DNA of 64,000 nt from Orbicella franksi (Eukaryota), in assembly GCA_964199315.1 (NCBI GenBank), contig OZ116701.1, positions 13,206,001 through 13,270,000 on the forward strand, written 5' to 3'. The position numbers and the translations under genes were made by a program. The notes below the pieces were generated by a model, which was not told the DNA's origin, ran no database searches, and saw nothing but the letters and a program-made list of their open reading frames with translations. Below, piece after piece: positions 2,358 through 14,632 of this stretch (position 1 is the first letter of the stretch; the number at the start of each line of letters is the position of its first letter).

Positions 2358-2437
2358 CCAAAACGAAACAACATTAAAAGGGGTAAACCCCATTCCGGCT
2401 TTCAGTTTGGTGTATTGTTCTACTTATCACATCCAAT
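2358..2437 (+). promoter_or_regulatory. Proximal promoter of IFI27-like gene 1: IRF-E/ISRE-like motifs plus CCAAT box
   Basis: CCAAAACGAAAC (2358-2369), GCTTTCAGTTTGG (2398-2410) and CCAAT (2433-2437), 110-190 nt upstream of ATG 2547. The same order of motifs occurs upstream of paralog 2. Confidence 0.5.
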
Positions 2438-2546
2438 CAAAGCGCTCCACGTTCACATTCGTACTCTCTATTGATCGTTGCACTGAGAGAAATAATCCGT
2501 GAAGCTAGCAAAGGGACGCTTTGGACTGAGGCCCTCGGATTTTACG

Positions 2547-4354
2547 ATGAATTGGAGCTTAACTGTCTGCGCTGTTTTGATTCTAAGTTCCTCGTGGCCA
2601 GCTTGTGCAAAAGGTAAGTGGAATAAGTAAAGTAAACGTCAATGGCAGGGGTGTTTACTGTTGAAATTTCAACTGTAACAGCTGTGGTTTAGGGTGAGAG
2701 TGTCATACGGATCTCTTATGGGTTTGAACTCTCTAAAGTGATTGCTGCGAACGACTGACACAAATTAATGGTGTTTGCTTTTGGAGAGGAACACAACGGC
2801 GAAGGAAATATGCCGCTTAAGCAACCGGCTAGCCTGTGCAGTGCAAAACGAACGTCGTTCAAATATATGTGTTTTCACCAGACTATAAGAAATTTATCTT
2901 TTGTAGAAGGAAGCCGTAGACAACTTTGAAAACCTCGATGGACTCCATCAATGGCCTGATTATATCATCTCGCAATCTATGAAAAATAGCGTATGCCTTT
3001 TCTGGATCGTAGCAGTGAAAACACAGTTGTGCATCAATTGAAACACTTCCGGTTTGAGCTCACGATCCGATTTCTGAGATTTATCTTTACTGACAGAATA
3101 CTGTTTACCGGTTTACAAGAAAAGTATAATCATAGTTTTATTATTTAGCATTGCCAGATAAGTTTCCTTGGTTTTAATGGTTGACTGAGGACCTTTATTC
3201 CTTCTGCTAAGCTGCTTTGCAGAGTGATAATTGCTTTTCAAATTCACCAGTGTTTCGTTCGAAGTGCGAGGAAGTAAAGCTTGTAATGGCTTTGCTAGCA
3301 GCGCGTAGAATGTCAAGGATTGGAGCGATTGGCTTTCGCACTTCAAAGAAGAGAGTTCAGAGTTTTTCAAGCAAGCGCGATTTGAAATTCACTTCGCGGT
3401 TTGAACAGAGCATTGATTTTTCCTAGAAAATCACCTAAAAATAGACCCTGACAATCTTCAGAGCCCAGTCTTCTAGCATTCAGTGACGAGCGGCGAAAAA
3501 TCCAATCCTAGGTCGGCCCATAAGCACAATACAAATAACTAGGCCCTTCTTTTGCTATCCATCTCAAAGCATTTTGGTGGAGAGATCGTTTATTATAAGC
3601 TTGATTTCAGTTCAAGGGCACTATCTGCACCACATGTACCATTGAGAGTACAAAATCACTCTTATTCGCCCGTTTATCTATCAGTTACTTGAGCTTTACG
3701 CCATTAATTATTCTTGAAGTCATGAAATGTCTCCAATAAATTAAAGAGAATAGATTTTTGTTAATTGGCGACTCGTAGCTATCCTCCAGAACTACAATGT
3801 TCAATTTATTTATACGCACATTCTTTCAGATCCATCGCAAAGATTGTTCTGTGTACCAGATAACAAACAATTCATTTATTACATGCACTATTTGTAGAAC
3901 GCCGGACTCCGGCATCTGGCACATTAACTAACTCAGTTAAAATACATGTACGGCGACTTGTGTTTATCATTTTCTAACTGCGATGTTACCTTCCCCGGCA
4001 TCAGATGAGAGTACTGATGAGGGGAGCCAGTGGTGTTGGAAAGAATACACAGCCGCTGCCCTAGTCGGGGGTACTACAGTGGTAGTCGCTGCCCCTTTCG
4101 TCCTTACCGCGGTAGGATTCACCACTGGAGGAGTTGCCGCAGGCTCCATTGCTGCAGGCATCCAGTCTGTGGTGTATGGAGGTACTGTAGCCTCAACAAG
4201 TGTGTTTGCTGGGCTTCAGAGCGCAGGAGCTGCCGGTTTAGGATCGACTGCAGCAGGTGCTCTTTTCGCAGGTGGTGCAGCAATCTCTACTTGGATCAAG
4301 AACAAGATAGCTCCGTGTAACGATGGACCAAAATGTTCATCAGACAAACAATAA
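2547..4354 (+). CDS. IFI27: IFI6/IFI27 (ISG12)-family protein with N-terminal signal peptide, join(2547..2613,4005..4354), 138 aa
   Basis: Exon 1 MNWSLTVCAVLILSSSWPACAK ends in phase 1 (aag|gtaagt). Exon 2 (catcag|AT) reads DESTDEG...AAPFVLTAVGFTTGGVAAGSIAAGIQS...LQSAGAAG, the ISG12 motif. AATAAA at about 4533. Confidence 0.9.
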
Positions 4355-5193
4355 TTAACATCGCAATAGAGAGTTTTCTCGTAAGGAGAGACTAGTGACG
4401 CTTATTTCATGGAGCTGTTAGTGAATGGTCCTTGCAGAATTTACTTCCTTGTCAACGCTTATGTTATCATGTTATGCTATATTCAGCTTGTTCGCCTTTT
4501 AACAGTTAGAATTCTAAGAACATTTTTGTTCTAATAAAACATATATTCTTGATTGTAGTGTTGTGAGTTTTATGTTTTATGGCGAATCTGCAGACTATAG
4601 TGTAGCCAGTCGGTCTGTATATCTGTATACATGTAAATGGGTTGTATATAAGGAACAAGTAAGGTGTGTTTTGTTGTTATCGGGTAAAAGGCGTGGAAGG
4701 AATTAAACACCAACCATCCAATAAAATAATGTTTTAAAAGTTATTCATTGATTCATTAAGTTTGCTGATCGTGGAATTTCTTTAAAATGTTACTGGATTT
4801 CGGATTTCATGGACAACCAAAGGTTCACAGATTTGTTGCCTGTTTTCAACCTTGCTAATGGCGGCTCTGAAACAGAAGAGTTATTATCATTGCTCATTAT
4901 TAGTTAACTGTAAGCCTCTGCAGTAGTTTCTCTGCACCAGTTTCTCAAGACATTACGCTCGCCATGCAACTGAGAAGTTCAGCGCTTTGCAAATTGGGAT
5001 TTAAGCAATAATAAATATACCGAATCGTAACAAACAACATCCCAATGGCCTAGTTTGTTGTAAAAATCTTCTCTATATTGACTCCCATGCTCGAGCCAGC
5101 TCTCCCGCTTTTTTATTGCAAACGGAATTCGTCGGAAATCTGAATTCGTTTATAGGCTATGGATCGATGGAGCAGCATATTGGAGAATTAAAA

Positions 5194-13645: not shown

Positions 13646-14243
13646 TAGTTGAATCATGCAATGTATTTTATTGGCATAATTGTTAAAATTGTCTATGTTA
13701 TTATAATCTTTGACAGTTAAAAGAACTCAAGATTTTACCTTCTTAAACTTTCTTTCAGTTTGTAGTTGAAAAGGAAACAACTTTCGTCTTTCTGTGCGGC
13801 TTGACATGTTACTGCTCGGTGGTTGACACACTCTCATTGGTTTATCGCACTCTGCGGACGTTGACTTGTTTAAAAAAATTATCTTTTTGTGGACAACTCC
13901 TTAAAACTCTTCAAGAATTTTTTTTCGTAAAATCGGCCCTTACAGGTCTACAGGAACCTTAATTCCTTAATAAGGTAAGCTTTTGCTTTTATCATAAGTC
14001 TTTCCAATCTAGTCGAGAATCACCTCGGTCGTCAAAACTTTCCTTTTGTATTGAATTGTACTTTATTATCCAACTGTAGCGAATACCGTCCAAATAACGG
14101 TACAAATATACAGCGATATTGTACAGTTATTTGTACAGTAGCAAACCTGTTTGCCGGACAGGTCGGCGCGCGCACGCAAAACTGTCACACTCTACCTCTT
14201 CCACCAATAAATTTATTGACTACAGCAATTAGATAATAAATCT

Positions 14244-14383
14244 CTTATTGGATGTTGTGGTGTGTAGTATCGCTTTATCTTTTTACTCGTTGTTTGTATT
14301 TTGACTCGCCCTACGGGCTCGTCAAAATACGCCACAACTCGTAAAAATGTACAGCGATACTACACACCAAAACATCTAATAAG
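14244..14383. mobile_element. ~140-bp palindromic (hairpin) non-autonomous element
   Basis: cttattggatgttgtggtgtgtagtatcgct ... agcgatactacacaccaaaacatctaataag, with an inner ttttgac...gtcaaaa stem. Confidence 0.7.
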
Positions 14384-14542
14384 ATATAGGTCTTTTTTAT
14401 TTGTGTTTGTGACGGTCATTTTAACCACATCTGAACAGCATGTGTCCACCAGTTTCTTTGTCTGCTCTGAACATATTTACATAAATATTAATGAATATTA
14501 TCACTACTATAAAATGTTTTGCCGATAAAGCCAAAACAATAC

Positions 14543-14632
14543 AGTTTCATTTCTGCTGAAACGAAGCAAAAATGTCAAAGGGGTACCCTCATCCAGACTT
14601 TCAGTTTCCTCTATTGTTCTAATACACCCAAT
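14543..14632 (+). promoter_or_regulatory. Proximal promoter of IFI27-like gene 2: two ISRE/IRF-E motifs plus CCAAT box
   Basis: AGTTTCATTTC (14543-14553), ACTTTCAGTTTCC (14597-14609, TTTCnnTTTC) and CCAAT (14628-14632), upstream of ATG 14730. Confidence 0.6.

Follow-up and report, generated by a model that had tools for sequence, protein, structure and literature searches.

ISG12 genes in the window

The window is the whole 64,000-nt stretch of Orbicella franksi DNA that was analysed, in which the coding features and one associated motif are placed as follows.

2547..2613, plus strand: coding part of gene 1 exon 1 (signal peptide); the mRNA extends back at least to 2492
4005..6261, plus strand: gene 1 exon 2 with the Ifi-6-16 domain; stop codon at 4352-4354, 3' UTR to at least 6261
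14730..14790, plus strand: gene 2 exon 1 (signal peptide), ending in phase 1
16045..16362, plus strand: gene 2 exon 2 with a divergent ISG12-like domain, out of frame relative to exon 1
47206..47215, plus strand: TTTCTATTTC in a dispersed repeat, 232 nt upstream of the start codon of a third ISG12-related gene

Two IFI27-like genes had been expected in this region, and the first is well founded; gene 1 matches Pfam PF06140 (Ifi-6-16) with 57.7 bits (gathering score 29.1), its reading frame is intact, and it is transcribed and spliced, as seen in the spliced transcript contig L011 (99.6-100% identity). The second deserves the name in part: gene 2 has no Pfam match, its exon 2 matches the coral ISG12 HMM (E 3e-12), and a frameshifting deletion after DESTNGEEN puts this exon out of frame with exon 1; P0090 shares the deletion, and the relatives P0091 and P0092 have an intact frame. 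ISG12 transcripts are present in several coral RNA-derived contigs, and the RNA evidence consists of the assembled transcript contigs L003, L004 and L011. The third in-window ISG12 gene was rejected as independent support since its TTTCTATTTC sits in a dispersed repeat, of which another copy is found at 34322-34612.

Organization of the promoters

The short elements that surround the inferred start sites are the following.

2337..2344, plus strand: TATA-like TATAAATA at approximately -145 relative to the inferred start
2380..2391, no strand: GGGGTAAACCCC, near-palindrome resembling a kappaB site; the box follows 8 nt downstream
2399..2408, minus strand: gene 1 proximal box CTTTCAGTTT, which reads AAACTGAAAG; candidate IRF monomer site AACTGAAA, about -83..-74
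2413..2422, plus strand: TATTGTTCTA, conserved box with a SOX-like ATTGTT core; Oculina keeps TATTGGTCTA
2433..2443, plus strand: CCAATCAAAGC, CCAAT box (NF-Y type) of gene 1, which fits TCF/SOX ATCAAAG too
2447..2453, plus strand: CCACGTT, conserved ACGT-core box in the promoter alignment
2481..2496, plus strand: CACTGAGAGAAATAAT, initiator/start-site block of gene 1; inferred start near A2482
13752..13777, no strand: third CTTTCAGTTT with GAAAAGGAAA, 850 nt upstream of gene 2; unconserved
14597..14608, minus strand: gene 2 proximal box ACTTTCAGTTTC, which reads GAAACTGAAAGT, a complete IRF-E match at about -92..-81 relative to the inferred start
14628..14638, plus strand: CCAATCAAAGC, CCAAT box of gene 2
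14688..14703, plus strand: AACTGAGAGAAATAAT, start-site block of gene 2

The original prediction placed a common motif about 30 nt before a CCAAT box in both genes, and the positions bear this out: the proximal box CTTTCAGTTT occupies 2399-2408 in gene 1 and 14598-14607 in gene 2, with CCAAT at 2433-2437 and 14628-14632, that is 34 and 30 nt after the start of CTTTCAGTTT. The perfect TTTCnnTTTC form attributed to gene 2 is also there, the box having the form TTTCAGTTTC and, of the two, being the only one to contain the perfect TTTCNNTTTC (14599-14608). CTTTCAGTTT occurs three times in the window versus 0.44 expected (at least three in 2 of 100 shuffles) and TTTCNNTTTC 12 times versus 6.6 expected. 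The GAAA cluster that holds the third CTTTCAGTTT, at 13752-13777, was rejected as an upstream enhancer, the Orbicella alignment beginning only at 13807.

The approximate start site of gene 1 is marked by the 5' ends of transcript contigs, which fall at 2492 (L011) and at the equivalents of 2464 and 2487 (L003 and L004), and the box lies about 75-85 nt 5' of the inferred start of this transcribed Ifi-6-16 gene. Judged from the alignment, the ISG12 promoter is compact, with about six short conserved boxes and no TATA at the usual -30 position. In particular, the CCAATCAAAGC CCAAT box is the top-conserved 10-nt window of the promoter (0.978) and a putative NF-Y site, in which CCAAT with a CA/CG 3' flank (ATCCAATCAAAG) stands in the proximal promoter at about -50 from the inferred start. 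The palindrome GGGGTAAACCCC is one mismatch off GGGRNNYYCC and becomes a perfect kappaB consensus in the copy L009_b (GGGAAACCCC), its spacing varying between copies. The TATA-like TATAAATA is identical in the gene-1-type promoters win_g1, Ofav_a, L007_a, L009_b, L059 and L020, is lost in L076, has no match in L009_a, and is variable in the gene-2 lineage; as a core promoter it is unsupported, no transcript contig extending as far as 2337. In Oculina, a TATA box lies 29 nt before the homologous CACCGAAAG.

Both proximal boxes are contained in a paralogous module of about 330 bp, comprising promoter and exon 1, that was duplicated together with the genes, and the two promoters share adjacent exact blocks at least as long as the box (TATTGTTCTA, CCAATCAAAGC and ACTGAGAGAAATAAT). 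The two proximal boxes are one event, not two; since the module was duplicated with the genes, the presence of the box in both paralogs carries little weight alone.

Upstream GAAA motifs

Two further motifs with GAAA cores are located more distally.

2360..2369, plus strand: gene 1 upstream AAAACGAAAC, a single AANNGAAA site with a 1-nt spacer, which is not ISRE spacing
14543..14567, no strand: gene-2-lineage element AGTTTCATTTC ... GAAACGAAGC, an inverted pair of 1-nt-spaced GAAA units (AGTTTCATTTC at 14543-14553)

Both strings had been described and are present; their pairing as ISREs does not stand, given the 1-nt spacers and positions that are not equivalent. AAAACGAAAC is kept only in win_g1 and L009_b/L001_b, its counterpart being CAAAAC in Ofav_a, L059, L020 and L076 (CpG decay) and an A-run in L007_a, so that in the gene-1 lineage the upstream motif was mostly lost via CpG decay. 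The element AGTTTCATTTC ... GAAACGAAGC is kept in all four gene-2-type promoters, degenerate in L076 and absent from the gene-1 type; it sits in a 28-37-nt segment missing from gene 1, and the gene 2 sequence aligned to the gene-1 upstream motif is AAAACAATAC. By this alignment the upstream motifs of the two genes appear non-homologous and mis-spaced for an ISRE.

Conservation among robust-clade corals

The promoter set comprised 12 copies from at least four robust-clade corals, nine formally aligned and three metagenome-derived; the metagenome scan was anchored on the CCAAT/ACGT block and returned mostly chance matches, the usable coral-derived contigs being L020, L059 and L076. Besides the window species and Orbicella faveolata, the group with the duplicated promoter includes at least two other robust-clade corals. 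The box is kept in 10 of the 12 copies (seven of the nine aligned and the three metagenome-derived) and in every intact gene; the two copies that deleted it are of the gene-2 type and both have disrupted reading frames. It is retained even in the rearranged copy L009_a, where upstream homology stops exactly at the box.

Among the seven aligned keepers, which were picked post hoc, the box is the longest invariant run, 10 nt versus 5 for the next (column-shuffle P 0.0005), and outside this run the keeper lineages are about 65% identical. When gaps are penalised, it ranks 97th of 248 windows, under the CCAAT, ACGT and start-site blocks. A second TTTC occurs in three of the seven keepers, and only one GAAA core (AAACTGAAAG) is constrained. 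Within one robust-coral group the box thus appears strictly kept and behaves as a constrained transcription-factor site would.

It is doubtful that the box is functionless and is shared only through young paralogs and orthologs, possibly with gene conversion, in AT-rich DNA rich in GAAA-type strings. This explanation agrees with the equally long exact blocks nearby in the window pair, with gene-1-type orthologs that are 76-90% identical throughout, with the deletion of the box in two copies and its absence from the homologous place in Oculina, and with the frequency of such strings in the window, evident from the excess of TTTCNNTTTC; it is opposed by the 10-nt invariant run across otherwise divergent lineages and by retention in every intact gene, the rearranged one included.

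Class of the proximal box

Vertebrate IFI6 and IFI27 use ISREs, two-core elements (GAAANNGAAACT) in which two GAAA cores are exactly 2 nt apart. The IRF-E/PRDI-type consensus is G(A)AAA(G/C)(T/C)GAAA(G/C)(T/C), one half of which is, in its textbook form, AACTGAAA flanked by G[T/C]; sites of PRDM1/Blimp-1-type zinc fingers (AGTGAAAGT-like) overlap IRF sites. No interferon is known from corals.

A conserved two-core element of the ISRE type, as first proposed, is not what the promoters contain. The second core is a minority state among the keepers and the upstream motifs offer no substitute, being mis-spaced and non-homologous; gene 1 has CAAACTGAAA in place of the ISRE spacing, the strict form at the box is limited to win_g2, Ofav_a and L007_b, and every copy reads GAAAG[T/C] where the ISRE has the 3' extension GAAACT. 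The IRF-E pattern, a AANNGAAA core with a G/C-T/C flank, is instead found, AACTGAAAG being invariant in seven of nine aligned copies and in three further ones. Tentatively, the box is interpreted as a constrained IRF-E/PRDI-type site whose most likely binder would be one IRF-family DNA-binding domain, not an ISGF3-type ISRE, because a single AANNGAAA unit (AAACTGAAAG) is what stays constrained.

The same restriction to one GAAA core would suit a real cis-element for a non-IRF factor, either a PRDM1/Blimp-1-type zinc finger or an uncharacterised cnidarian one, giving basal or tissue-specific and not infection-responsive expression. The neighbours of the box, which are SOX/TCF-like, CCAAT and ACGT boxes, are those expected in a proximal promoter of the constitutive type, coral RNA-derived contigs (L003, L004 and L011) contain ISG12 transcripts, and IFI27-type names are absent from the examined supplements of two cnidarian poly(I:C)/dsRNA-response studies, including PMC8476169. 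This alternative is possible though rather unlikely, considering that AACTGAAA with its G[T/C] flank is the textbook IRF-E half and that four copies fit the full 12-nt IRF-E consensus.

Promoters of more distant corals

Beyond the group, conservation of the box and of its neighbours diverges. In Oculina, the flanking TATTGNTCTA and CCAATC are kept and GGATTCCCC stands where the box would be; no strict GAAANNGAAA is found from -300 to the ATG in the promoters of Oculina a, Oculina b or L010. The expectation that the motif would be more conserved than neighbouring DNA in other corals therefore has a mixed outcome: among the close-relative keepers it is the longest invariant run, two gene-2-type copies have deleted it, and at deeper divergence it is no more conserved than its surroundings, Oculina keeping the neighbour boxes and not the motif, and Oculina and L010 being without strict GAAANNGAAA in that interval. 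With the discovery lineage excluded, strict motifs are present in one of four independent promoters (P ~0.25), a scoring from which the promoters of L008, L006 and the third Oculina gene were left out because no first exon was found.

Across 209 kb of coral sequence, the full 12-nt IRF-E consensus is matched 13 times, and ISG12 promoters account for four of the matches. Six others, in Desmophyllum L006 (13180-14600), were rejected since the region is one degenerate ACTGAAA-rich repeat. Another match precedes the ISG12 exon of the independent lineage L008 by 390 nt; it was set aside, its region having no significant similarity to the window promoter.

The box appears lineage-restricted and therefore is alone no proof of a pre-vertebrate IRF-to-ISG12 link; the present data argue against its deep conservation. 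The pre-vertebrate origin of the regulon, as originally put forward, does not follow, the box being absent in Oculina and L010. Very unlikely, in consequence of these absences at the homologous or a nearby position, is an ancient regulon leading from IRF to ISG12 without interferon, which cnidarians and vertebrates would have inherited from their common ancestor and which would be visible as conserved ISRE-type elements; it is further opposed by the two-core form being unconserved even in close relatives, by the repeat origin of the third gene's motif and by the count in independent promoters. To its credit are the ages of the ISG12 family (from sequence matches) and of the IRFs (PMC8713801), which both predate vertebrates, the vertebrate use of ISREs, the antiviral response of oyster IFI27-like genes and the IRF-E consensus in L008.

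A candidate element for coral ISG12 expression

Cnidarian IRFs retain DNA-binding residues, and cGAMP and poly(I:C) induce IRF genes (PMC8713801, PMC8476169); promoters of poly(I:C)-induced Nematostella genes carry IRF/STAT/NF-kB/ETS motifs (Lewandowska et al. 2021, PMC8476169), and the antiviral differentially expressed genes of oysters include IFI27-like ones (PMC12803857). The general idea that cnidarians run ISG-like programmes without interferon, their induced promoters carrying IRF, STAT and NF-kB motifs, is thus already published; among the papers searched, none ties ISG12/IFI27-like genes of corals to IRF or reports their induction.

Under the preferred reading of a single IRF-type site, a promoter and signal-peptide exon of about 330 bp would have been duplicated along with the tandem ISG12/Ifi-6-16 genes in the robust-clade group, carrying, some 75-90 nt before the start, a candidate transcription-factor site in which a single AANNGAAA unit is constrained; a protein, presumably an IRF, would bind the box, which probably cooperates with the adjoining kappaB-like palindrome and the CCAAT box, and the gene may be infection-inducible. 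Against this reading stand the rank of the box once gaps are penalised, its replacement in Oculina, the unconstrained second core, the absence of IFI27-type names from the examined supplements of the two dsRNA-response studies and the lack of a measurable effect of IRF knock-downs on cGAMP-induced Nematostella genes (PMC8713801). A bolder extension, which is speculative and itself improbable, is that the kappaB-like palindrome, the single IRF site and CCAAT, all within 110 nt of the start, confer interferon-free inducibility by cytosolic nucleic-acid sensing on merulinid-type coral ISG12 genes, the ancestral link having been either retained or convergently re-invented.

The box is a plausible, lineage-restricted candidate element. 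If an IRF binds it, the box would offer a defined element that can be mutated, in a small promoter of some 150 bp, with which to ask if ISG-like effectors are under the control of cnidarian IRFs; single IRF knock-downs in Nematostella, which had no measurable effect on cGAMP-induced genes (PMC8713801), did not settle this. ISG12 would add one more gene family to the published cnidarian ISG-like programmes.

Comparison with known systems

The closest likeness is to IRF-E/PRDI sites: on the minus strand the box reads [C/G/A]AAACTGAAAG[T/C], with AANNGAAA in every copy and a proximal promoter position, and all 12 consensus positions are matched in win_g2, Ofav_a, L007_b and L009_b. The difference resides in the 5' core, which is CAAA in win_g1, L007_a and L009_a, one core only being constrained; moreover, the likeness assumes cnidarian IRF specificity from conserved DNA-binding residues (PMC8713801).

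The ISREs of vertebrate IFI6 (6-16) and IFI27 (ISG12), bound by ISGF3 (STAT1-STAT2-IRF9), belong to genes of the same Pfam Ifi-6-16 family, and the coral element is likewise of GAAA type and lies no more than about 100 nt from the start site; in contrast, the coral box does not have the GAAANNGAAACT form, its second core is unconserved and it is confined to one coral group. With the Nematostella poly(I:C) study (PMC8476169) the coral case shares the idea of vertebrate-type immune factors driving ISG-like genes without interferon, and a kappaB-like palindrome adjoins the coral box too; that study is a genome-wide motif scan of induced genes, whereas the coral case concerns one family approached by phylogenetic footprinting.

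A Candidate IRF-Type Box and the Gene 1 Promoter

The proximal motif CTTTCAGTTT (hereafter the box), located before the CCAAT box of two neighbouring ISG12/IFI27-like (Ifi-6-16) genes, may plausibly be a single IRF-type site, kept across one group of corals; this part of the interpretation is supported, whereas ISREs and an ancient regulon find no support in the comparisons made. Every string quoted in the original prediction is found at its place. The window contains three copies of the box against 0.44 expected, two of which derive from one ancestral site. In a pairwise alignment the upstream regions of gene 1 and gene 2 are homologous over about 330 nt before the ATG and have in common other exact blocks of 10–15 nt beside the motif (TATTGTTCTA, CCAATCAAAGC, and ACTGAGAGAAATAAT), so the sharing of the motif by the paralogs is expected and uninformative alone, as had been cautioned.

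Transcript contigs have three independent 5' ends, at 2492 (L011, a coral-sample contig) and at the equivalents of 2464 and 2487 (Orbicella L003 and L004), and in Oculina TATATATAG is 29 nt upstream of the homolog of the invariant CACTGAGAG block; from these we infer a main start of gene 1 near A2482.

Features of the two genes and their promoters (window positions, forward strand; negative values are relative to the inferred start of gene 1)
about -145: TATAAATA of gene 1, reached by no transcript contig
about -120: AAAACGAAAC of gene 1
2380–2391, about -100: GGGGTAAACCCC of gene 1
2399–2408, -83 to -74: box CTTTCAGTTT of gene 1
about -50: CCAAT box of gene 1
2547–2613: coding part of gene 1 exon 1 (signal peptide), ATG at 2547, donor after 2613
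from 4005: gene 1 exon 2, stop at 4352–4354
14598–14607: box of gene 2
14730: ATG of gene 2
16045: start of gene 2 exon 2

GGGGTAAACCCC, 8 nt upstream of the box, forms a kappaB-like near-palindrome, and its homolog in promoter L009_b of the three-gene cluster L009 (about 8350) is a perfect GGGAAACCCC.

Gene Structure and Neighbouring Elements

The window is coral sequence; the nearest matches to the gene 1 product are proteins from Orbicella faveolata, Oculina patagonica, Desmophyllum pertusum, and other scleractinians. This 138-aa product matches Pfam Ifi-6-16 with 57.7 bits against a cut-off of 29.1. In L011 (99.6–100% identity to the window) 2492–2613 is joined directly to 4003/4005–6261, which indicates that gene 1 is transcribed and spliced as read, with a 3' UTR of at least 1.9 kb; the 1.9 kb beyond the stop (4354–6261) represent either read-through or a 3' UTR unusually long for a 138-aa protein. 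Gene 2 is a divergent member of the family; its product has no match in a Pfam search but is recognized by an HMM from coral ISG12 proteins (E 3e-12). Its subfamily (EEAANPIA..VQCVVDGG), although conserved in relatives and expressed there, lies under the Pfam Ifi-6-16 threshold; among its members are P0092, an intact, spliced ortholog with a signal peptide, and P0091, a 93%-identical relative whose frame is open. A deletion after DESTNGEEN at the start of gene 2 exon 2 (16045–16110) disrupts the reading frame between exon 1 and the domain; the frame is intact in P0091 and P0092, and because P0090 (98% identical) has the same broken frame, the deletion is probably real in the window species. 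The gene 1 promoter and exon 1 (2200–2640) are 85% identical to Orbicella gene a (L002 9669–10094), whereas exon 2 has 58% identity with the exon-2 product of that gene (P0015) and 76% with the Orbicella paralog P0013, suggesting that recombination or conversion among paralogs gave promoters new coding-exon partners.

Immediately beyond the contig of the gene 1 transcript there is a foldback (6165–6362) about 200 nt long, its arms showing 73% complementarity; it is single-copy among the loci compared and contains two strict GAAANNGAAA motifs 17 nt apart (6267–6293). The stretch 7640–7930 and the Desmophyllum ISG12 intron (L006 10270–10520) both contain a tRNA-like SINE-type repeat (GGTTCGAGCCCTG box); directly after the window copy, the intergenic 12-mer AGTTTCACTTTC (8042–8053; GAAAGTGAAACT on the opposite strand) fits the ISRE type perfectly, with no evident adjoining gene. 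Between the two ISG12 genes, tandem arrays of a GAGCCAGGATCC-like unit of about 15 nt (9290–9480 and 10560–10700) lie in opposite orientation about 1.1 kb apart, as an inverted pair.

Conservation among Close Relatives

Loci carrying the same tandem genes were compared from Orbicella faveolata (L002), the ENA coral assemblies L007 and L001/L009 (the latter with three genes), Oculina patagonica (L005), Desmophyllum (L006), and two more distant assemblies (L008 and L010). In an alignment of nine promoters from four species the box is letter-perfect in seven, namely all five resembling gene 1 and two of the four resembling gene 2, and it is also kept in three further coral-sample contigs (L020, L059, and L076). 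It is deleted in the gene-2-type promoters Ofav_b and L009_c, both belonging to damaged-looking genes: the 63-nt first exon of Ofav_b breaks the signal-peptide frame and no second exon follows within 2.8 kb, while L009_c has a C-terminal frameshift. Such conservation is what would be expected of a functional protein-binding site that a decaying gene can do without; judged by its sequence, the best candidate binder is an IRF.

Conservation of the motif relative to its flanks depends on the measure: the box is the longest invariant run in the seven keepers (10 nt, the next being 5), a length reached by 0.05% of column shuffles, but with gaps penalised its window comes 97th of 248 (score 0.789, mean 0.75), the best windows being CAATCAAAGC, TGAGAGAAAT, GCTCCACGTT, and ATCGTTGCAC. 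The promoter consists of a series of short conserved boxes, including an IRF-E-like one. In the keepers the base following the box is variable (G, C, G, T, G, C or C), leaving unconstrained the second TTTC that an ISRE requires; on the other strand the constrained unit is AAACTGAAAG, one AANNGAAA IRF site plus flanks. The second GAAA motif predicted upstream of each gene is present in both, as AAAACGAAAC in gene 1 and AGTTTCATTTC in gene 2, each with one AANNGAAA, but the two lack positional equivalence and, because their cores are separated by 1 nt, ISRE spacing. AAAACGAAAC is kept only in the window and in L009_b, its CpG having elsewhere decayed to CA or given way to an A-run. An inverted pair, AGTTTC[A/G]TTTC ... 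GAAACGA[A/T]G, has AGTTTCATTTC as its left arm; the 28–37-nt segment holding the pair occurs in each of the four gene-2-type promoters (with partial duplication in L009_c), is degenerate in L076, and is missing from the gene-1 type.

In the first gene of the L009 cluster, the promoter locally duplicates the kappaB-like/box/CCAAT module (1220–1450); the box of the distal copy reads CGTTCAGTTT, with a broken GAAA core.

Deeper Divergence

Promoter a of Oculina can be aligned across TATTGGTCTA and CCAATC and has GGATTCCCC at the box position, where MAFFT places a gap. Strict GAAANNGAAA, with a background of 0.248 per kb in 209 kb of coral DNA, is absent within 300 nt of the ATG in both Oculina promoters and in the L010 promoter (first exon at 7303). 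With the discovery lineage left out, it occurs in one of four independent promoters (0.07 expected per promoter, P ~0.25), which is unremarkable. At -232 of a third ISG12-related gene in the window there is TTTCTATTTC, discarded as support because it falls in a dispersed repeat that recurs at 34322–34612. Matches to the full IRF-E consensus are fewer, 13 in the 209 kb of coral DNA, four of which are the ISG12 promoters; six matches in Desmophyllum were set aside as a degenerate ACTGAAA-rich repeat. One match, 390 nt upstream of the L008 ISG12 coding exon and placed relative to that exon alone, weakly hints at recurrence. The comparisons thus leave unsupported an IRF-to-ISG12 regulon older than vertebrates.

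Comparison with Known Systems

The DNA-binding residues are retained in cnidarian IRFs, whose own expression is induced by cGAMP and poly(I:C) (PMC8713801, PMC8476169, PMC13319465). Against a strong IRF claim, IRF knock-downs in Nematostella left cGAMP responses unchanged (PMC8713801). IFI27-type names are absent from the supplements of two cnidarian dsRNA-response studies, where naming differences or incomplete tables could hide them. IRF, STAT, NF-kB, and ETS motifs are already known from poly(I:C)-induced Nematostella promoters (Lewandowska et al. 2021, PMC8476169), and an IRF axis and IFI27-like antiviral differentially expressed genes have been described in oysters (PMC8218723, PMC12803857); in the light of these reports, the coral box would be a further candidate instance of a kind already known.
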